64,000 nucleotides of DNA. Source: Hyaloraphidium curvatum SAG 235-1. Its lineage: Eukaryota; Fungi; Monoblepharomycota. This document shows positions 2,216 through 13,694 of this stretch, piece by piece. The stretch spans positions 412,667 to 476,666 of the forward strand of contig JAIVFI010000040.1 in the NCBI GenBank assembly GCA_025558095.1, in the 5' to 3' direction. Position 1 is the first letter of the stretch; every line of letters starts with the position of its first letter. Both the position numbers and the translations under genes were made by a program. Below the pieces are notes generated by a model. That model saw only the letters and a program-made list of their open reading frames with translations. It had not been told where the DNA came from and did no database searches.

Positions 2216-3251
2216 ATGAACTTCGCCGGGAAGCTCGCCGCCATCTCCGGCGGGGGCGCCGGCATGGGCCGCGAGCTCGTGCTGCGGCTGGCCAAGGCCG
2301 GCTCGCGCGTGGCATTCTGCGATTTTCTGCCCAAAAATATCGGAGAGACGCTGGAGATTGTCGGGAAGGAGGTGCCCGGGGCGAAAGTTACGGGCCACCG
2401 GGCCGACGTGACGAAGGAGGAGGACTGGAAACGATTTCGGAAGGAAACACTGGAGCAACATGATTCGGAGCACGTGAGATGGGCCGCCGAGGACGACAAG
2501 CGGCTCCCTGACAAACTGCGTGACCCTCTCTGCTCCTTGGGACCTCTCGGCCCCCAACCGACCCTCCGAACCGCTCTCGTTCGACTAGCTGGACCTCCTA
2601 TTCAACAATGCGGGCATCGGGATCCCCACCAGCATGGTCACCACACCGCGGGACCAGTTCGACAAGGTCTTCGACGTGTGCTACAACGGCGTCTACCTGG
2701 GCTGCCGGACCTTCATGGGCGACCTCGTGAAGTCGCCCGAGGCACGGATCGTCAACACCGCGTCGGCAAACGCGTTCCATGCCGTGCTGGGGATCCCGCC
2801 GGGGTGGCCGCACGTGTCCTGTGGGTTTCGTCCGGCGCGGACTTCGATCCACCCCTGATCGTCAGTTTTCTCAGACTCTGCCGCCAAATTTGCCGTCCGC
2901 GGACTCACGGAGGCCCTAGTCGTGGACCTTCGGACGAACGCGCCCAATGTCAAGGCGCACCTCGTGATGCCCGGCCACATCGGTACCAAGATCGGCTCGC
3001 ACACCTCCCAAGTCATGGGGGGCGACAAGGTGCCGGACGAACTGATGGACGGGTTTGTGAACAAAGCGGCCACGTCGCCGAAACAGGCCGCGGAAATCAT
3101 CCTGAAGGGGGTTAAGGAGGGGAGGTGGAGGATCCTGGTGGGGCCGGACGCAGAGTTCATCGACGCCAAGGTGCGCGCGGATCCGGAGCGGGCGTACGAG
3201 CCAGAGTTCATGGCCGAGATTGCGGCGGCGGGGATGGAGGTCAAAGTCTGA
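2216..3251 (+). CDS. Short-chain dehydrogenase/reductase, 2 introns (2474-2588, 2821-2874)
   Basis: SGGGAGMG Rossmann motif; splicing restores LLFNNAG and the catalytic YSAAK across the second intron. Confidence 0.9.
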
Positions 3252-3869
3252 CGGCGAGGCTATGGGCTGTATTCGGCGCCGGCTTCAGACGGGACCTTGT
3301 AGATCTCTTGGATCTCGCGTTCTCTCCGGATCACCTATAGAACATCTATTGAATCTCCCCGCTCCGACGCAACCGCATAACATCGCATTCCAAGCGGCAG
3401 TCGGGAGGACGCAAACCCGCCCGCCGCCGACCGCCCGAGAGCCACACAGATGACTCGCATTCCGCGCTCTGGTCGCATGCTGCGCCAGATAGCTGTCCGC
3501 GACTCCATGACTCCTGCCTAGCTCAGCGTGATTGGCTGCCAGCTTTAGAGGACGGTGTCCGATTACCATTCCGGGAGGACTGGTCACAAAGAGTAGCGGA
3601 CCCTACGACGCCGCAAGTTTACGCCTTCCGAGGCGGTGGAACGCCGGTTGCTTCAAGCTCCTTCAGAAGTCGCACGAGGAGGAAAGCATTATGCCGACAC
3701 ACCAGGAGTGCCTCGACGCCAAACCTTTTGGGGCGCGGACGGCCTTGACTCATCACCGGCATCGGCCAGTCGGAGGTTCGTTCTAGGCCCGCCGAGTCAG
3801 CCTCGAATTGTGCCGCCGTCCAGAAGAGAAAGAGAAAACGGCCCCTCCATCAGTGCCCTTACTGGAGCT

Positions 3870-5032
3870 ATGCGGCTTCTCCTCGTTTTGACCCTGCTGG
3901 CAGGCTCTGTGGCTCGTGGCCCGCCGGTGGCGTCGGCGCCGACAACGAGGTGGGGGGCGAAGTGCACGCAACGCAGCGAAAGCTGACCGACCTCGGTGCC
4001 CGTGCGCGGTGCGCTCCTCTGTACATCCTCAGCGTGGAGAGCCTGCGTGCCGCCCCCGCGAATCCGGTTGCTCACGCAGGCTCGGCGCCCGGGGCGGGCG
4101 GCCGCTTGCCGAGGCGAGCGGGGGACGATGACTCGGATTCGGCTCGGGGAGCGAGCACTGGTTTCGGCCGAGGCGCGGCGGGCGGCATCGTATTCCGGCG
4201 CTCGTGCGAGGAATGCCAGGGCTACTGCGAGTACGCGTACCCAGGCGCGCCGCCCGACCACGTCGCGTGCACGGACGACGGAGGCAGCATGCATATCCTA
4301 TACGAGCGCTACGGAGGCGTGGGTTTGCCGCTTGCACCGGCCCCGGCAGTTAAGGAGATTCTAACGGTGATGCCAAGGCCGACGTCACAGCCGACCCTTG
4401 CTCCGCTTCGCCTTGCAGAAACGGCGGCACATGCAGTGCTACAGGCGAGGCAACCTTCAATTGCGCGTGCACGGAAAGTTTCACGGGCCCCAGTGGGTGC
4501 GGCTGTCAGAAGCATGGCTCGTTTGCTGATCCCGAGGACCTCAGCGTGCGAGAGCATAGTCAACTTCTGTCTGGTGGGCAAGTGCCAGAACGGAGCGTCA
4601 TGCACCTTCCTCCCGCTCACGTCGCCATATTTCTTCTGGTACGGTGGAGCCCAGGTCCTCTGTGACTTGCACATCTCAGCATGTAGCGTAACTGCACCCT
4701 CCGATCCACGATTCTACGGACGCTCAGCACTTGCTCTCCGGGCTTCAACGTTACGACCTGTCAGAACGCGTACTTCAAATGCTCGGCGAGCGGCTCCGAG
4801 GCGGACCCAGACAAGTGCTACAAATACTTTGTTTGCAGTGGTGCGGGTGGGTCCTTCACCCAAAAGAGCTGCCCCAAGCTGGGCACAGACCAGGTGGGCC
4901 GCCGCGCTCCCACAACGGTGCGGCGTTAATGCTCCCGATCCACTTCGTCAGTACTTTTTTGACCTAGTCACGAGACAGTGCAAAAGCTCCAAGAAGAACC
5001 CAACTGTGTTTCCCGGCTGTTCCTTGACCTAG
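3870..5032 (+). CDS. Secreted protein: signal peptide, 2 EGF-like domains and a C-terminal chitin-binding type-2 (CBM14/peritrophin-A-like) domain; about 5 introns
   Basis: MRLLLVLTLLAGSVA signal; exons 4391-4492, 4545-4638, 4728-4893, 4952-5032 splice in frame to DPCSASPCRNGGTCSATGEATFNCACTESFTGPTCE / FCLVGKCQNGASC...YFFCTCSPGFNVTTCQ / FKCSASGSEADPDKCYKYFVC...SCP...YFFDLVTRQC...C. Confidence 0.8.
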
Positions 5033-5339
5033 GCCCCACTGCGGATTGCTGTAAAGAAACTACCTTCGTCCGCTTCGTCTCGAAAACCAGGTTGGGGATA
5101 AGGACCATCTCATAGAACCTAGATCGAGCTATTGTGAGGCAGAGCTTTGACTAAATGTCAGTGTGTTTGTGGCGTTTGCGGAGCAACATCTTGCCAATGC
5201 AATGTGCGCCCCGTGGCGGCACGGATGCGCCGCGGCTTCTGACGCCATCAGACCATGATGTAGATGATGCGTTTCGGTCCCGTGCTGCCCTGAAGGACAT
5301 GAAACCCTGGAAAATTCCGATCTTGTAGACGATCTTGCG

Positions 5340-5407
5340 AAGCCGAGTTCATGGCGCCGATATCGCGGATGCGGGGATGGAGGTCAAGGCCTAACAGCGG
5401 AGGCAAT
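5340..5407 (+). repeat. Degenerate direct copy of the 3' end of the SDR gene (about 3198-3263)
   Basis: gagttcatggc..gatatcgcggatgcggggatggaggtcaaggcctaac matches gagttcatggccgagattgcggcggcggggatggaggtcaaagtctgac. Confidence 0.8.
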
Positions 5408-5614
5408 AGAACGATATCGATCAATTATAATCCCGATTGATTAGTGCATGAGGGATGGCGATGTCCAGGCTCTCGGTGACTCGATGAGGAGGGTGACGTG
5501 GCATCCCTACTCAACCGCGACTCAGCAAACAACCCTGTTTCGCCCACGGCCGCCGTCGCAAACCTCTTCCACGACTCTTTCACGTCACCCGCTACCCGCG
5601 TAGAACCAAGCACA

Positions 5615-6496
5615 ATGTCGGCTCGCCGCACCGACCCCCTCGAAAGCACCACCTCGTCGTCCGGCATCACCGGCGTCCCCACCAGCGGTGCCGGCGTCAC
5701 CTCTTCTTCCATGCCCGGTGCGAGCCTCTGCTCTCCCGCGCTCAGCCTGTCGCTTACCTTTCGGAGCAGCGGCGGGCACCGACAGCCCCATCCGCATGAT
5801 GGAGAGCACCTCCGGCCACCCGACCACCGAGCACGGCATGCCCGGGGTGTCTTCGGGCGCCACGGGCGGGTACGGCAGCATTGCTGGCACCGGGTACTCC
5901 AGTACCGCCGGCACGACCGACTACGGCACTACCGGGGCCGGCACGGGCCTCGCCGGGGACACCAGCCGCGGCTTCTCCGAGAGCGGCGTGGGCTCCGTCC
6001 CCGGATCGACCGGATACGGCTCGCACGGGATCACCGCCGCCGGGGTCACCGGCACGGGCACGGACGCGTACGGCCAGCCGACACCCGTGGCGCACGAGGC
6101 GGCCAAGCCTTCCAAGGTCGGCGGGGCGATGGACAAGATGATGGGGTCGGTCAAGGTGGGGCGTGGCCTGCCCCATGGGCGGAAAACGGCTACTGATGCC
6201 TGTTTGTCTGCAACAGGAAGGGCTCGGGAGTATGACCGGCTCGCACGGCATGCAGGCCGCCGGGCACGAGCAGAAGCTCGAGGGGCAGGCCAGGATCGAC
6301 GCCGCCAAGGTACAGTCCCCTCCTTCCGTCCCCTCCAGCGAGCTGCGCTGACCCCAGATTTCCATAGGCGGAGAAGGAGATCAAGGGCACCCAGAAGGTC
6401 GCCGAGGGCGACATGAAGCAGCACTACGGCACCATGGGCCAGGGGGTCACGGGCACCGCCGAGGAGGCCGTGGGGCACACGCGGAGGATGCACTGA
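5615..6496 (+). CDS. CsbD/LEA-like hydrophilic stress protein with Gly/Thr-rich N-terminal extension, 3 introns
   Basis: KPSKVGGAMDKMMGSVK|EGLGSMTGSHGMQAAGHEQKLEGQARIDAAK|AEKEIKG; introns 5718-5769, 6156-6216, 6310-6367. Confidence 0.75.
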
Positions 6497-6953
6497 TCAG
6501 GCAGAGGGGAGATCTTGAAGCTGCTTCGTTTCCTTTTCTTCGCGCGATGGCGCTGTACATGTCTTGATGCGTCCTGCTGAATAGCTTACGTCGCTTCCAC
6601 CCCCGTTCTGCCTCCCCCTCGTCCAGCCTGTCCTCATCACACCTCATCGCCAGTTCCTCCAACACTTCCTTACGAGCCTCTTCCTTTGGTTCCCGACTCG
6701 CTGGGACTCCGCTCAGAGGGAAGGCAATTCGGGAGTGCGGTGCAACGGGCCTGTCACATGCTGCGGCTTCGGGCTTCGGTCCTCCGGGCTTCGCTTCCTG
6801 TCCGGATTGGTGGTTCGGGCTTGTGGTTCGGGCTTCGCTCCTCGTCCGCATTGGCGGAAACTGGGGGGCGGCGGTGGCTGTGGGGAGGCTTTCGGGTGCG
6901 GTGTCCCAGCGCGAGGGAGACGCAACGCCACGGGGCTTTCCGCCGCAAGTCGA

Positions 6954-7045: not shown

Positions 7046-7466
7046 ATGTCGTCGCACACCACCACCTCCGGCAAGCCTTCCACGGTCGGTGGGACTGTGG
7101 ACAAGATGGTCGGGTCCGTGAAGGTGGGACATTCCTTGCTGCGCGGGGTGGGAGCGGGGTTCTGACGGCCGCTTTCCGTTCGACGTAGGAGACCGTCGGG
7201 AACGCGACCGGCTCGCAGTCCCTGCAGGCCGAGGGCCAGCTGAAGAAGCTCGAGGGGGAGGCCAGGATCCAAGCCGCCAAGGTGCCGCGCCTCCTTCTCC
7301 CCCGACTCGGGCCGCGCTGACAAACGTTCCCGCGCAGGTCCAGAACGAGATCGAGGGCACCAAGAAGGTCGTCGAGGGCGACCTGAAGCAGCGATTCGGC
7401 ACCGCGGGGCAGGGCATCTCGGGCGCCGCCGAGGAGGCCGCGGGGCACATCCAGAGGGGGCACTGA
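7046..7466 (+). CDS. Short CsbD/LEA-like stress protein, tandem paralogue of 5615-6496, 2 introns
   Basis: KPSTVGGTVDKMVGSVK|ETVGNATGSQSLQAEGQLKKLEGEARIQAAK|VQNEIEG; same two intron positions as the paralogue. Confidence 0.8.
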
Positions 7467-7679: not shown

Positions 7680-8759
7680 TCAGAGGGCCACGAAGACCGC
7701 GCCGACGGCCGCCACGGCGCCGATCACGCCCGCCGAAACCCTGCCGGCCGAGGCGGGGCGCGAGGTCGTCGTGGGGGCCGCGGTCGTCGGGGCGGCGCTG
7801 CTGGTGGCAGGAGCAGATGTGGTGACAGTAACAAAGGACGTGCGGGTGGTGGGGGCCACCGTGGCGGTCGCGGTGGCGCTGGTAGCCGGGACGTCGACCT
7901 TGGCGCACTCTGGGGCAAGGAGGAAGGAGCACGAGGTCAGAAAAGGCGAACGGGACCGCGCGTAGGCGGGCACCCACTTCCTTCAGCGCTGAAGGTGCCG
8001 ATGGGGATGACGCTGCAGTTGCCGTTCAGGACGATCTGGATGCCGGGGATGGGCGACGCGCAGGCGGTGTCGGTGAAGGCGTCAATCACGCCGGTGCCAT
8101 TGGCGTTGCAGGTTGCCTTGCCCGAGCCGGGGATGCCGATGGCGCTCAGCGAAGTGCAGGAGCCGGCCCTGACCGCGGTGACGCCGAGGGTCTGGCTCAG
8201 GTCCGTGGTGTTGCAGTTGGTGTTGAGGAAGATGCGGCCCTCGGCAAAGTCGCCGACCGTGCCGGGCGGGTAAACGGGGGCAAAGGTTGTCGAGCACGTG
8301 GTGATGTTGGAGGCGGCGCCGTCGACGTTGCACTTTCCGGTCTGCGCGATGACGATGGGGTCCGTGCACGACGGCACGCCCTGCACGGGCACGACGGTGA
8401 TGACCTGAGCCTGGCCTGCAAGTAAACTGGTCAGAACGTGCTTGAAAACACGATGACCCCGTTACGAGCAGCCTTTCTGGCGCAGGCCGCCCGCCGACGA
8501 ATGGGGGACGGGACGCGGGGACGCGCCACCGCTCATAACGCGCGCGGGCAGGGCCACAACGCGACGCCCCGTTGCGGGCTCAATCTCCGTCCTTTTCTCG
8601 GCAGCCTGCCTCCCAAGACGCGTCGCTTTCGTGCTCACCGCTGCAGTTGGCGTTCGGGAATGTGGCGAACGAGAAGTAGAGGAGGTTCTGCGCGGCAGCC
8701 GGGCGCGCGCACGCGGCGACGACGAGGGCGGCAAGGAGAACGAGCGCGGCACGGGACAT
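7680..8759 (-). CDS. Secreted Cys-rich cell-surface protein, probably GPI-anchored; ectodomain paralogue of the receptor kinase
   Basis: Signal MSRAALVLLAALVVAACARPAAA; introns 8416-8638 and 7910-7977; Cys-rich domain, Thr/Ala stalk, terminal hydrophobic SAGRVSAGVIGAVAAVGAVFVAL* with no cytoplasmic tail. Confidence 0.8.
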
Positions 8760-9066
8760 GGCGCGGGAGGGTTCCAAAGGCGCGTGAAAACGGGGGGACG
8801 AAAAACTGATGGGGACGGTGGAGACGTTGCCGCCGTGCCCAACACGCCGTGTGGCCAGACCACACGAACATTCGACGGGGCGCAGCAGGCTCTTTAAAGC
8901 TCAAGGCGAGAGACAAGAAGAAAAGATTCGTTGACTGCAATCCACAAGTCTTTGCGGGTTGGATGGCCCTCACGCCCGCCGACTCCTTGCCCAGGGACAA
9001 GGCGGATCAAGACGACACACACGACCGCCAACACGACGCCGTTCAACTTGCAGCCACGGCATCCGA

Positions 9067-10209
9067 TCAATCCGCCTCGGGCACCCCGAACCTCTCCACC
9101 AGCTCCGGCCAGAACCGCCTCGCCACGCTCGGGTACTGCCTCGTCCTGTTGAGCATCCACCTCTCCGCGTCCCCCGCGAGGTCCTGCCCCGTCCAGCCCG
9201 GCTCGGCGTCCGTCCGCGCGTTCAGAGCGAGGGGGTTGCGCTCGGCGGGCAGGACGGATTCCGGAAGTGGTTCGACGCGGGTTTCGAAGGATGGAGAAAG
9301 GAAGTAAGGGAGGCTGATGCGTCCGCCGCGGACGAGGAGGGTGTTGACGCGGTGGGTGGTAGCCGGGCAGCGCCCTCGACTAAAATGGTCAAATGGAATT
9401 GCTAGGTTGACGGCGACGGTGCCGGGAATGTGAGGCACGTCCGTCCAGTCCCCGCTCCAGTTCTGCACCTGAAGCCCCGGTCCATCCGAGACGACCAGGG
9501 TGATCCAAGAGGCCGCGTCGCGGTGCGGGCCTAGTCCCTGGACAAAGTCCTCGTCCCCCTGCTCGTCCGCCCCGAGTGCCGGATAATGCGACAGCTTGGC
9601 GAAGAGGAACGGCTCGTTCCGCACAAAGTGTTCGTCCATGTAGACCTCCGGCAGCCCCAGCGTCCGCATCATGAGCGCGTTGACGGCGTGGAACGTCGCC
9701 CTGCAAGCGTCCCAGTACCGCTCCATCGCGGGCCTGAAATCGGGCAGCGCCTTCTCGTCCGGCCACACGTTGGGCCCCTGCAGCACCCTCTTCCACAGCG
9801 GCGCCTCGGGGTCCGTGCACGGCGGCCGGTCGAAGCCGGCGTCGAAGTTCTCGCGCCGGTTGGGCCGCCACATGGTGCGCTCCTCGCCGAGGGGCATCCA
9901 CCCGCGGAAGTGCGGCGAGAGGCGGCAATCCACTTTAGCTTTTTCCTCCTCGGGGAGGGAGAAGAAGAAGCGGGCCTGTTGAATGGCCTCGGCGGCGATT
10001 TCCTCTGTGACGGGCGAGCCGGCGACGAGGAAGAACCCGACGTCGAAGAGGGCTCGGTGCATGGTGCGGAGGAGCTCGGGTTCGCGCGGCGTGCCAAGGA
10101 GGGAGAGGTCGGCGATTGGGATAGCCGGTTCCCCGGGGGCAGGGGCGGAGGGGTGCTTGGAAGGGGCAGTGTCTCCCGCGGCTGCGGGGGCGGCGTCGCC
10201 GTCGGGCAT
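9067..10209 (-). CDS. 2-oxoglutarate/Fe(II) dioxygenase (IPNS/DIOX-like)
   Basis: IPIADLS, VGFFLV, QGPNVWP, HYP, GPHRD (HxD), ATTHRV, RISLPYF. Confidence 0.9.
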   Translation of the reverse strand: MPDGDAAPAAAGDTAPSKHPSAPAPGEPAIPIADLSLLGTPREPELLRTMHRALFDVGFFLVAGSPVTEEIAAEAIQQARFFFSLPEEEKAKVDCRLSPHFRGWMPLGEERTMWRPNRRENFDAGFDRPPCTDPEAPLWKRVLQGPNVWPDEKALPDFRPAMERYWDACRATFHAVNALMMRTLGLPEVYMDEHFVRNEPFLFAKLSHYPALGADEQGDEDFVQGLGPHRDAASWITLVVSDGPGLQVQNWSGDWTDVPHIPGTVAVNLAIPFDHFSRGRCPATTHRVNTLLVRGGRISLPYFLSPSFETRVEPLPESVLPAERNPLALNARTDAEPGWTGQDLAGDAERWMLNRTRQYPSVARRFWPELVERFGVPEAD

Positions 10210-10644
10210 CGTGCGCCTTCGTTCCTCGGAGTACACGACGTCGACTCGGTGCTCGGGAGGAGAGGAGGAAGAAAACGGTGTGCCGATGCTGCCCACCCTG
10301 GGCTCAGGGGATTTGGAGGCGAAGATGGCGCAATGGACGCGGGCCGTGCGTGGTTACGGTTGTTTGCGGCGCCTCACCACCGCCAGCGAAAACGAACTTC
10401 GGCAACTTCGTCAGCATGCCGCGCCCGCGCCCTAGGCCCGGGGCCAACCAGTTCATTCCGCCGCCTTCGGGGGACGACGAAAACGACGATTGATGATGCG
10501 CAGGGATCTGATGCGCACGGAGGGAAAAGACGATTCCTGAAAAGCAAGGAGGCGCGCGACCGAGGGAAAAAGAATGTGTCGCATGTAATGGTGCAGAATA
10601 GTCCGCGAATCTCGAGCCCAGCCCAATCTCAATGCCATGGTGGA

Positions 10645-11284
10645 TCACTCCGCGTCTGCAGCCAGCTCCGATGCCACGTTCGTCCTCAGCTTGATGTCGT
10701 TCCGCGGGTAGGCGACGCAGGCCAGCACGTATCCCTCCCTGATCTGATCCTCGTCCAGGAATCCCTGCCCGCCCTGCTTCACGTCCCCGGGCTTGCTGCC
10801 CCCGACCAGCTTGCACGCTGCTCCGCGCGTCAGCACCGAATGCCGGCCCCGTGGCGCGCGGGGCCCACCGCACTGGAGGCATCCCCCGTTCCGGCACCCG
10901 TCGTCGAACGGCAGGTCGATCCCGGCCTCCTGCGCGGCGTCGAGGATCGAGTGGTGCTCCGAGATGGGGATGGTTTGGGCGATGTCCTTTGGCGGGGAGG
11001 GGATCAGGAGCGGCGGGGGCGAAGATGCGTCCGGGGCACCTCGTCCTGGATCAGGGTCACTGAAAGACACATCGGGCGTTCAGCAATCACGATGGGCGCG
11101 GACGGAGGGGCGTCCCACCGCGGTACACCTTCGGCACCCTCCTCGCCGGCTCCGCGTCCTTCACCGCAGTCTCCGGGCCGACAAGGCCGTACGCCGCCGG
11201 CCCCGAGCCCGTGGCTTCGGTGGGCACGGAATCGGCGGGCAGCGCGGGGCGCTCGCGGAGCGTGCGGACGTCGACTTCCTCCAT
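10645..11284 (-). CDS. Plant/cyanobacterial-type [2Fe-2S] ferredoxin with N-terminal extension; 3 introns including a 20-nt microexon
   Basis: Spliced KVYR|VTLIQDE|DIAQTIPISEHHSILDAAQEAGIDLPFDDGCRNGGCLQC|ACKL...QGFLDEDQIREGYVLACVAYP; CX4CX2C...C. Confidence 0.85.
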
Positions 11285-11388
11285 TGGGGGACCGAGCGGG
11301 GATTCGGGAGGGGTGCGGAGAAAGCGGGGCTGACGTCCCGCGCAAACTTCAACTGTCCCTTCTAGTTCCGCTGCGAGGTTCTCCTCCG

Positions 11389-13694
11389 TCACCCTTCCTT
11401 CATGGCGCTGAGTTCGTTGAAAACGGCGATGAAAGCTGGTCGCATGGAGGGGTCGTGATCCCAGCAACGCTCCATCAAGGACCACAGCCGGTCGTCGGTT
11501 CCTGGCGGCTTCTCGGGCCTTTTCCTGAGGACCGCAACTTGGTACATGAGCTGGTGTGGAGAGACTTAGGGCGGGGCCCAACAGCTCCGGGATGCCGTGC
11601 CACTCACCGCTGGAATGTTGGTCGCGTTCTCAAACGGATACCTTCCCTTGCTGACGACCTCGTACATCAGCATGCCGAACGCATAGACGTCGGCGGGAGC
11701 CCGCAATGGCTGTCCCTCTAGGATCTCGGGCGCGACGAAGCCGGGGGTCCCCGAAATCCCGCCGGGAGCCGTGGTCGCCTTGGAAGCGTGGTGCCGCATC
11801 CGCGATAGTCCGAAGTCCGCAATGACGGCCCTTTCGCCGTCCACGAGGACGTTTGCCGCCTTGATGTCGCCGTGCAGGATGTTCCGGGTGTGCAGGTAGA
11901 CCATGCCCGCCGCGGCGTCGCGGAGATACCGAATCCCCGTTTGCGGATCCCAGTTCTTCGCGGCAATAGCTTTCCGCAGGTTCCCGTCCGGCATGAATTC
12001 CGAGATGAGCATTGGAGGCGACTGGCAGAACGCCATTAGGGGCAATACTGTTCGAGTGCGTGTCAAAAGCGCAAGCAGACAACGCTGGTCATTACGCACC
12101 GTTCCGATGGATGAGACCGTGCCACGTGCGTGCTTCCTTCAAAAACACGGCCCAGCCTTCCGCATCCAAACCGCCCCGGAGCGTCTTGACGGCGACTCTA
12201 GTCGTGCCAAACAGGATCCCTTCGTAGACCGTGCCGAAACCCCTTTCTCCGACAGGCTTCGTCGAGTCCACAACGATCTGGCCGGGCTCGATGAGAAGCT
12301 TGTGAAGCGGATCGGATGTTGCGACGAGGTCCGAGGGCTCTCCCGGGGAGCTAGACGGAGAGATGGCCGCCGCAGCAAGAATGCCCGAACCAGCTCCCAG
12401 TGGGGATTCTGGAGCGTCTGTGACATCAACCGGAAGGACAGCTGGGGATGCTCCGGCGGGAGTGCTGGAAGATTCCGACCCTGGCTCCTTCTTGGGAGGC
12501 AAGGCGACGGCGGTGTTCTGCGTCTCCTTCGAAACAACGGTGTTCTGCGAGAGAAGAAGTTGGCTGCGTTCCGCCATCGTCTGCGAAGGTGCTCACCATG
12601 GCAAGTGTAGGCACATCCGATGATGCGGAGTCCGGAACACTTGCAACAATGGCCATAGCTGGTCTAGCAGTAGCGGTTGATGTGATATCTTTGGCCGTTC
12701 CCTTATCCTGTCCTTGAAACCTAGCAGGCGCCGCAGGTGGTGGGGCGCCTCCTTTCTCAGTCTCCTTAGAAACGGTGGCGGCAGCAGGAGCCTCGGATTT
12801 CCGGCGCCGCGACCAGAGAATGAAACCGAGGATGGCTCCAACCGCCGCGAGGCCTCCGATGACACCGCCAAGTATCGCTCCGATCGGCGCTCCACCTCCG
12901 CCCGTATCGGGGGGCGGCACCACTGTAGGAGTCGCGGTTGTTGAGGTTGTGGTTGTTGTCGCGACCGTCGTCCTCGAGGTTGAAGTCGCCAAGGCTGACG
13001 TCGTGACGGGGTCGCTAACTCTCGCGCAGTCTGTATTGATCCGGTAAGCGGCTCGTCACTGCCCGCAAGCCACTGTGAAAACGCCTACTTCCGATGGCGC
13101 TGAAGCTGCCGACGGGAATGACGCTGCAGTTGCCGTTCAGGACGATCTGGATGCCGGGGATGGGCGACGCGCAGGCGGCGTCAGTGAAGGCGTCGATCAC
13201 ACCGGTGCCGTTGGCGTTGCAGATGGCCTTGCCCGAGCCGGGGATGCCGATGGCGCTCAGCGAAGTGCAGGAGCCGGCCCTGACGGCGGTCACGCCGAGG
13301 GTCTGGCTCAGGTCCGTGGTGTTGCAGTTGGTGTTGAGGAAGATGCGGCCCTCGGCAAAGTCGCCGACCGTGCCGGGCGGGTAAACGGGGGCAAAGGTCG
13401 TCGAGCACGTGGTGATGTTGGAGAATGGGCCGTCGATATTGCACTTTCCGGTCTGGGCGACGACGATAGGGTCCGTGCAAGAGGGAACGTATGGGCACCA
13501 CGGTGATGACCTGCGCCTGACCTTAGGGCGACCAGGCCTTAACCAAAGGCCAGGCCATAGAACAACGAAGGTTTGCCCCACCAGCGCAATTGGGGTCCGC
13601 GAAGGTCGCGAACGAGAAGTAGAGCAGCGTCCCCTGAGCCGCCGCGGGTCGCGTCAAACAGGCGAAGGCCAAAAGAACGATAGCACGCTGCCAT
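11389..13694 (-). CDS. Single-pass receptor-like kinase (Cys-rich ectodomain, Thr stalk, TM, TKL-type kinase); 5' end apparently damaged or remodelled
   Basis: Introns 13031-13088, 12545-12596, 12048-12099, 11551-11607 join the ORFs in frame; TM IGAILGGVIGGLAAVGAILGFILW-SRRRK; GERGFGTVY, VAVK, HGDIKAAN, DFG, GTPGFVAPE, DVYAFG, CWDHDPSMRP; start codon uncertain. Confidence 0.8.

Follow-up and report, generated by a model that had tools for sequence, protein, structure and literature searches.

An unannotated six-exon gene of Hyaloraphidium curvatum predicted to encode a secreted protein in which two EGF modules precede a divergent CBM14-fold module

Introduction

Fungal proteins that carry a CBM14 module are secreted chitin binders, and the effector Avr4 is an example (PMC3778014, PMC6128652). 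The module is mostly attributed to animals. The fungal proteins that have been described with it stand alone and belong to a few groups of ascomycetes (PMC3778014). Here we describe a gene at positions 3870-5032 of a 64,000-nucleotide stretch of DNA (the window) from the monoblepharid chytrid Hyaloraphidium curvatum SAG 235-1 (assembly GCA_025558095.1, contig JAIVFI010000040.1, positions 412,667 to 476,666 of the forward strand). The predicted product is a secreted protein in which two EGF modules are followed by one divergent CBM14-fold module. No description of EGF together with CBM14 in fungi was found in the literature of one open-access library; the domain families themselves are known, and two paralogs of the gene have already been deposited in GenBank.

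The predicted protein shares with Avr4 of Cladosporium fulvum and Pseudocercospora fuligena (PDB 6bn0 and 4z4a) that it is secreted, fungal and equipped with one CBM14-fold module. Avr4 differs in that it consists of CBM14 alone, passes as CBM14, has neither EGF modules nor the N-terminal module described below, and comes from plant-pathogenic ascomycetes; the identity is 22-26%. The Avr4 effector family is made up of stand-alone CBM14 proteins with which plant pathogens protect the chitin of the wall against chitinases of the host. The window protein was not filed with this family, since an N-terminal module and two EGF modules accompany its CBM14-fold module and since its host is reported to be a free-living aquatic chytrid. 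Animal peritrophin-A/CBM14 proteins, such as tachycitin (1dqc), Der p 23 (4zce), chitotriosidase (5hbf and 6so0) and peritrophic-matrix or mucin-like proteins, have the same six-cysteine pattern and the same fold, and are reciprocal profile matches. However, they usually contain many tandem units or a GH18 chitinase domain, whereas the window protein has a single unit after two EGF modules. The nearest relatives are of rotifer type and share the order of an EGF module, a linker of five or six residues and a CBM14-type module. They differ in lacking the four-cysteine N-terminal module, in having from one to seven EGF modules and, in one case, in carrying an astacin protease domain, and their hosts are animals or AT-rich (25% G+C) eukaryotes. 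The two deposited H. curvatum proteins, KAI9000139.1 and KAI9024668.1, belong to the same family; their modules follow one another in the same order, and their introns agree in position and phase (KAI9024668.1 lacks introns 2 and 5). They are encoded at separate loci.

The analysis reported below indicates that the window gene is intact and that its product would be a secreted EGF-EGF-CBM14-fold protein, bound to chitin through the CBM14-fold module, that decorates or crosslinks the wall. We assign this combined reading a probability of roughly 0.6.

Results

Exon-intron structure

The stretch at 3870-5032 on the plus strand is an intact, unannotated gene of six exons and five introns. The exons add up to 822 nucleotides, that is, 273 codons and a stop codon at 5030-5032. 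All five introns have GT..AG ends; their lengths are 83, 59, 52, 89 and 58 nucleotides and their phases 2, 0, 1, 2 and 0. The parts of the gene are as follows.

3870-3949, plus strand: exon 1, with the start codon and a signal-peptide-like hydrophobic N-terminus; phase 2 at its end
3950-4032, plus strand: intron 1, 83 nucleotides, GT..AG; the frame between exons 1 and 2 is restored by its removal; outside the RNA contigs
4033-4318, plus strand: exon 2, with a Gly/Ala/Asp-rich spacer, an Arg-Arg site and then the four-cysteine N-terminal module (about 4187-4318)
4319-4377, plus strand: intron 2, 59 nucleotides, GT..AG, phase 0, with a CTAAC-type branch site 12 nucleotides before the acceptor
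4378-4492, plus strand: exon 3, with cysteines 1-5 of EGF1; 28.9 bits with Pfam EGF
4493-4544, plus strand: intron 3, 52 nucleotides, GT..AG, phase 1
4545-4638, plus strand: exon 4, with the last cysteine of EGF1, cysteines 1-3 of EGF2 and, at its end, two bases of a split cysteine codon
4639-4727, plus strand: intron 4, 89 nucleotides, GT..AG, phase 2, interrupting that cysteine codon
4728-4893, plus strand: exon 5, with cysteines 4-6 of EGF2, a six-residue linker and cysteines 1-4 of the CBM14-fold module
4894-4951, plus strand: intron 5, 58 nucleotides, GT..AG, phase 0; a spliced joint in an RNA contig of run X1
4952-5032, plus strand: exon 6, with the aromatic-Asp motif, cysteines 5-6 of the CBM14-fold module and the stop codon

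The order of parts in the encoded protein is thus a hydrophobic leader, a low-complexity, Gly/Ala/Asp-rich spacer that ends in Arg-Arg, a four-cysteine module, EGF1, EGF2, a linker and a six-cysteine module. Splicing yields 22 cysteines (four in the N-terminal module and six each in EGF1, EGF2 and the C-terminal module). All of these, and all ten splice dinucleotides, are intact, and no exon contains a stop codon or a frameshift. The protein ends five residues past the last cysteine, without a hydrophobic tail, so no membrane or glycosylphosphatidylinositol (GPI) anchor is expected.

A preliminary description of this stretch, made from its letters, had placed junctions at 4492/4545, 4638/4728 and 4893/4952. 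All three are exact on the sequence, and two further junctions, at 3949/4033 and 4318/4378, complete the gene. Its proposal of in-phase splicing to two six-cysteine EGF repeats and a six-cysteine module can be read directly from the exons, and the architecture that it had given (signal peptide, EGF, EGF, peritrophin-A/CBM14-like module) is supported.

Paralogs, conservation and annotation

When the H. curvatum genome (31.9 Mb in 55 contigs) was searched with exon 5, four more copies were found, on contigs C46, C12, C31 and C15, with identities of 71, 40, 42 and 37%. The gene therefore belongs to a family of five in this genome. Each of the four paralogs has a Pfam-grade EGF about 330 nucleotides upstream, and their reading frames switch at the same residues as in the window gene with matching intron phases, including the cysteine codon split by intron 4. 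Exact products of two of these loci, which the profile of the C-terminal module described below retrieved, are deposited as hypothetical proteins, KAI9000139.1 (C46) and KAI9024668.1 (C12), and between them they have a junction equivalent to each of the five introns of the window gene.

Every intron has a counterpart in the family. For intron 1, the KAI9024668.1 model has an intron right after the leader, at a split Ser codon. Intron 2 corresponds to a phase-0 intron at the same residue in the C46, C31 and C15 paralogs and in KAI9000139.1. Three paralogs, and both annotated models, have intron 3 at an identical position and in an identical phase, and the C46 and C12 paralogs have intron 4 at the same split cysteine codon. 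Intron 5 is at the same position in the C46 paralog and is absent from the C12 paralog. The window exons tile KAI9000139.1 colinearly, with breaks at the same residues, at 59, 61, 70, 71 and 50% identity, the last three values being those of exons 4, 5 and 6; identity to KAI9024668.1 is about 45%. Over exons 4-6 (111 gap-free codons), the ratio of nonsynonymous to synonymous substitution rates (dN/dS) against KAI9000139.1 was 0.24, with a dS of 1.18, while the introns of the two genes aligned no better than shuffled sequence. As far as sequence comparison goes, the paralogs amount to comparative proof of the predicted exon model and of purifying selection on it. Together with the EGF score of exon 3 (below), these agreements exceed what chance would give. 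In introns 3, 4 and 5, the window gene and the C46 paralog have identical six-base 5' splice sites, and the rest of these introns is unalignable.

A search of the annotated proteins with the exon 2 module, over lengths of 198-630, found neither the window copy nor any other protein. The 71%-identical annotated paralog, used as a query over lengths of 108-343, returned itself and two generic EGF proteins, and again no window copy. The word "cryptic" in the preliminary description is apt for the window copy because it is missing from the annotated protein collection. The gene is, however, not unique, being one of five paralogs of which two were already GenBank hypothetical proteins. Neither of these carries a CBM14 annotation.

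The two deposited models also differ from the window gene in detail. The start of KAI9000139.1 (C46:108129-111293, about 710-1093) was placed at an internal Met, within the N-terminal module. This model looks truncated, as a signal peptide and the module's first half are encoded upstream at the same locus. In KAI9024668.1 (C12:303848-307012, 1498-1737), Cys1 and Cys3 of the CBM14-fold module have been lost together, and introns 2 and 5 are missing.

The EGF modules

Pfam scoring of the window protein was performed exon by exon, and whole-protein tests were performed on the annotated paralogs. The cut-offs were 21.5 bits for EGF (PF00008), 22.1 bits for CBM_14 (PF01607) and 27 bits for EGF_CA (PF07645). 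After splicing, EGF1 and EGF2 (exons 3-5) both have six cysteines with the human type of EGF spacing. EGF1 has five of its cysteines in exon 3 and the sixth in exon 4, and exon 3 alone scored 28.9 bits with Pfam EGF (28.1 bits in the genome scan). This module thereby passes the profile check that the preliminary description had suggested, and the corresponding paralog exons scored 26.5 and 37.6 bits. EGF2 has three cysteines in exon 4, one in the codon split by intron 4 and two in exon 5. It could not be scored in one piece in the window because it is interrupted by intron 4; in each annotated paralog, two Pfam EGF stretches were found.

EGF_CA, the calcium-binding type of many Notch repeats, had no match in the window exons and reached 15.5 bits in one paralog, below its cut-off. 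Both EGF modules are, by their predicted sequence, of the non-calcium-binding kind. EGF is common in the H. curvatum genome, with at least 34 six-frame matches, 18 of them above the cut-off.

The C-terminal module

By Pfam's own criterion, the predicted C-terminal module is not a member of CBM_14, and since the scores were sub-threshold, its assignment to CBM14 rests on a reverse profile search and on the fold. The preliminary description had asked for a check against PF01607. That check was sub-threshold in Pfam, while the reverse profile and the fold of a paralog did match CBM14. The successive cysteines of the module are spaced at 11, 5, 11, 16 and 12. When the module was aligned with 20 canonical CBM14 units, the six cysteines, an aromatic pair before Cys3 and the aromatic-Asp pair after Cys4 were in register. 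The aromatic-Asp pair between Cys4 and Cys5, which in Avr4 is part of the sugar-binding face, is retained in all five paralogs.

The reverse profile (77 positions) was built exon by exon from the five paralogs and searched against 1.84 billion representatives, giving 47 matches at an E-value of 0.001 or below. Apart from H. curvatum itself and the EGF-linked relatives, the matches examined were animal multi-CBM14 proteins. Those with names included an Elysia chitin-binding type-2 protein, two Blattella hypothetical proteins, a Branchiostoma chitinase and a Schistocerca mucin-like protein. When the matches were in turn scored with Pfam, P0006 had ten CBM_14 stretches (264 bits) and P0010 had four. 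A sequence search of the PDB with the same profile gave two matches only, both of them CBM14: 6g9c, a nematode-type chitinase (E 0.038), and 4zce, Der p 23 (E 0.16).

Because intron 5 interrupts the module of the window gene, the fold was tested on the closest paralog. Residues 125-196 of KAI9000139.1 were modelled with AlphaFold from an alignment of 34 rows, and the model had a predicted local distance difference test score (pLDDT) of 81.8. In Foldseek, the ten best PDB matches of this model were all CBM14 folds (Der p 23, Aplysia 8in3/8in6, chitotriosidase, tachycitin, Avr4 and Blo t 12), with probabilities near 1 and E-values not below 0.047. An exhaustive VIA fold search of 48,161 representative chains returned 12 chains with a Z-score of 2 or more. 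The top eight were all CBM14 folds (Z 7.6, 6.8, 6.2, 6.0, 5.7, 4.7, 4.0 and 3.1), and unrelated chains began at Z 3.0. The matches to Avr4 had Z-scores of 6.2 and 5.7, with the aromatic-Asp motif in the same segment. Our data thus indicate that the C-terminal module is a divergent CBM14-fold module.

Three other loci, at C5, C14 and C12, to which a Pfam CBM_14 scan of the whole genome had pointed first, were rejected as paralogs, being C-terminal modules of lytic polysaccharide monooxygenase (LPMO)-like secreted proteins. These proteins (C5:380633-383743, C14:732026-735184 and C12:582352-585459) end in a different six-cysteine module, with scores close to the cut-offs of CBM_14 and CBM_19 (25.9 bits at C5), and no Pfam match was found for their catalytic part.

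The N-terminal module

The preliminary description had overlooked the four-cysteine module of exon 2. The last 44 residues of this exon match at least 79 places in the genome. In an alignment of 25 copies, four cysteines, a Tyr/Phe-Pro-Gly-Ala-Pro core and an Arg-Arg pair just before the first cysteine are conserved. Most copies have a second Arg-Arg or Lys-Arg near the end of the module, where the window copy has Glu-Arg. Many copies are split by an intron, and a phase-0 intron comes directly after the module in three or more paralogs. No match was found in Pfam, in the Atlas or among PDB folds, and the model of the module (pLDDT 75) has three strands and a helix. A four-cysteine module of about 45 residues, usually placed between dibasic pairs, thus occurs at the N-terminus of many secreted H. 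curvatum proteins. It may serve in sorting or processing, or in contact with the wall.

Transcript evidence

The transcript data came from assembled, unstranded contigs of one public run, which was guessed to be RNA; its spliced joints and the uncovered 5' part of the gene fit RNA as the run type. One contig of 2,245 letters carries the joint 4893/4952 with GT..AG ends, and intron 5 is thereby confirmed for the sense strand. Intron 4 is retained in this contig, which is continuous over 4604-4890, and so is the beginning of intron 3, over 4490-4537. The contig also skips the following stretch.

4540-4605, minus strand: antisense spliced stretch of 66 nucleotides skipped in the RNA contig, with CT..AC ends

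This corresponds to a minus-strand GT..AG intron inside exon 4. An intron on the plus strand at these positions was considered and rejected, as no allowed shift gives GT..AG, GC..AG or AT..AC ends on that strand. A minus-strand protein gene behind the antisense RNA was likewise rejected: when the flanks of the joint were joined and the frames counted, no convincing reading frame was found. We infer that the contig is a product of unstranded assembly, in which a weak sense mRNA was merged with an antisense RNA that is spliced and begins within exon 5.

A second contig, of low depth, spans 4343-4493, including part of intron 2. Both contigs end at 4490-4493, exactly at the donor of exon 3, as would be expected where spliced and unspliced paths diverge. 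The 2,245-letter contig extends 1.4 kb into the downstream CsbD-like gene, and because it does so, its depth of 118 is uninformative for the EGF-CBM14 gene.

Relatives outside H. curvatum and possible origin

The reverse profile search returned no other fungus at an E-value of 0.001 or below among the 1.84 billion representatives. The few single-stretch matches that also cover the end of an EGF were two from Adineta steineri (CAF0807787.1 and CAF1328137.1), one from Didymodactylos carnosus (CAF1587477.1) and the groups P0008, P0046 and P0039, from eukaryote contigs of 25% G+C; the three accessions are rotifer EGF-like domain-containing proteins. In all EGF-linked relatives, the linker between the last EGF cysteine and the first cysteine of the module is five or six residues long and has the same pattern, which argues that the composite EGF-CBM14 unit arose once. 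P0046 is colinear with KAI9000139.1 over the EGF-EGF-module part (32% over 174 residues), and P0008 over the EGF-module part (38% over 109 residues). P0008 occurs in two NCBI assemblies that consist of tens of thousands of contigs. It also occurs in a metagenome, on a contig of 377 kb with 25% G+C where the neighbouring PhyH gene looks metazoan. Our guess is that its source is a rotifer.

The architecture had been called animal-like in the preliminary description. This is apt, in that the same EGF-to-module junction was found only in proteins of rotifers or AT-rich eukaryotes, and the other matches are animal multi-CBM14 proteins. The module tree, the phylogeny that it had proposed, is poorly resolved and does not decide between transfer and retention; one of its branches, supported at 85/87, has the fungal modules and the P0008 group on the same side.

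One scenario, which we hold only tentatively and consider doubtful as a whole, is that the EGF-CBM14 unit had a single origin, occurs only in rotifer-type animals and the Hyaloraphidium lineage, and moved between a micro-invertebrate and a chytrid by gene transfer in either direction. Fusion to a lineage-specific secretion module, gain of introns and expansion to five genes would have followed in the fungus. Alternatively, the opisthokont ancestor may have had an extracellular-matrix gene of which the family is a remnant after loss nearly everywhere else.

Genomic setting

The window has 68% G+C, and the gene is situated in a stretch of lower G+C (53-63% over 4200-5600). Upstream of it lies a short-chain dehydrogenase gene, and about 55 nucleotides that code for the C-terminal end of this enzyme recur 2,143 nucleotides downstream, so that the EGF-CBM14 gene is bracketed by a direct repeat. 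The 2.1-kb block between the two copies is the one of lower G+C. The arrangement fits an insertion or a local duplication.

3213-3256, plus strand: direct repeat copy 1, where the short-chain dehydrogenase gene upstream codes for the C-terminal end of its product
5356-5399, plus strand: direct repeat copy 2, a relic of the dehydrogenase C-terminal end, 82% identical
5616-6497 and 7046-7466, plus strand: two tandem three-exon CsbD-like genes, between the EGF-CBM14 gene and the GPI/receptor-kinase pair

The GPI/receptor-kinase pair is located at 7680-13694. The first CsbD-like gene is joined to the 3' end of the EGF-CBM14 gene in one RNA contig, and because the mean depth of this contig is 118, it is probably highly expressed.

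Discussion

The architecture of the encoded protein is nearly certain, and we propose the following function for it. The protein would be secreted and possibly cleaved after the Arg-Arg pair. Its CBM14-fold module would attach it to chitin, most likely that of the fungus's own wall, and the EGF pair, made rigid by disulfides, may hold the N-terminal module off the wall, as a spacer or as a surface for contact with other proteins. The product would then be a wall-decorating or wall-crosslinking protein and not an enzyme. For chitin binding by the CBM14-fold module, judged from its sequence and from the modelled fold, the odds lie between even and good.

Several results weigh against this reading. 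The signal peptide was judged by eye; a comparable hydrophobic leader opens all four paralogs. Exon 5 alone scored 16.6 bits with Pfam CBM_14 (E 0.0089, 33 of 53 profile positions), which is below the cut-off; the C46 paralog reached 16.8 bits, and neither the full annotated paralogs nor the intronless C12 module had a match at an E-value of 0.1. The fold was obtained on a paralog that is 71% (exon 5) and 50% (exon 6) identical to the window gene and not on the window product, and in absolute value the E-values and Z-scores of the fold searches are modest, as a domain of 70 residues would lead one to expect. Expression evidence is thin. The junction check that the preliminary description had proposed gave the joint 4893/4952, but 4492/4545 and 4638/4728 were not seen spliced in the assembled contigs, antisense spliced RNA lies over exon 4, and no RNA contig covers 3600-4342 (exons 1-2), where it should be kept in mind that such contigs show presence and not absence. 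Finally, the best structural match, Aplysia 8in3/8in6, was solved with tannic acid, and some CBM14-fold proteins bind other ligands.

This last point bears on a different reading of the same gene model, in which the CBM14-fold module binds another glycan, a polyphenol or a protein, and the product is a soluble extracellular ligand or scavenger. Besides the tannic acid structure, the sub-threshold Pfam score speaks for it, as does the loss of the Cys1-Cys3 pair in one paralog, which shows a module that is evolving freely. Against it, the aromatic-Asp motif and all six cysteines are kept in the window copy, the profile retrieves chitinase-linked and peritrophin-type CBM14 domains, and H. curvatum is chitin-walled and has other chitin-directed modules. 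We regard a ligand other than chitin as unlikely, though it deserves serious consideration. That the window copy is a silent or decaying paralog, with a marginal, incompletely spliced and antisense-overlapped sense transcript, and that only the other members of the family are functional, seems to us rather improbable. Such decay would account for the absence of the copy from the annotated proteins, for the uncovered exons 1-2, for the read-through of introns 3 and 4 and the antisense-type joint in exon 4, and for the Glu-Arg that replaces the dibasic pair ending the N-terminal module in most copies; the position in a lower-G+C block bracketed by a duplicated gene end would also fit. It is difficult to reconcile with exons free of stops and frameshifts, with 22 cysteines and ten splice dinucleotides that are all intact, and with a dN/dS of 0.24 against the nearest paralog. 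In addition, a spliced sense-strand junction is present in the RNA, in which missing coverage does not amount to absence.

EGF modules serve as ligands in animals, and the product might be imagined as a diffusible EGF-type ligand of the receptor-like kinase and the GPI protein that are encoded as a pair 2.6 kb downstream. What connects them is their proximity only, and two unrelated CsbD-like genes intervene. The four paralogs are on other contigs (a search for kinase neighbours was not made on these), and EGF is a module in general use among extracellular proteins in the H. curvatum genome. We consider such a ligand role very improbable. The reading that we prefer remains that of a secreted, chitin-bound wall protein.

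In the published annotation of the genome, one member of this family was missed, another appears truncated, and the chitin-binding-type module was recognised in none. The less expected feature of the protein is its N-terminal four-cysteine module, which is carried by dozens of other secreted H. curvatum proteins and merits a study of its own. The five-gene chytrid EGF-CBM14 family is a data point on the distribution of animal-style extracellular modules across the opisthokonts, and its nearest relatives, being of rotifer type, bear on the question of gene movement between micro-invertebrates and aquatic fungi.

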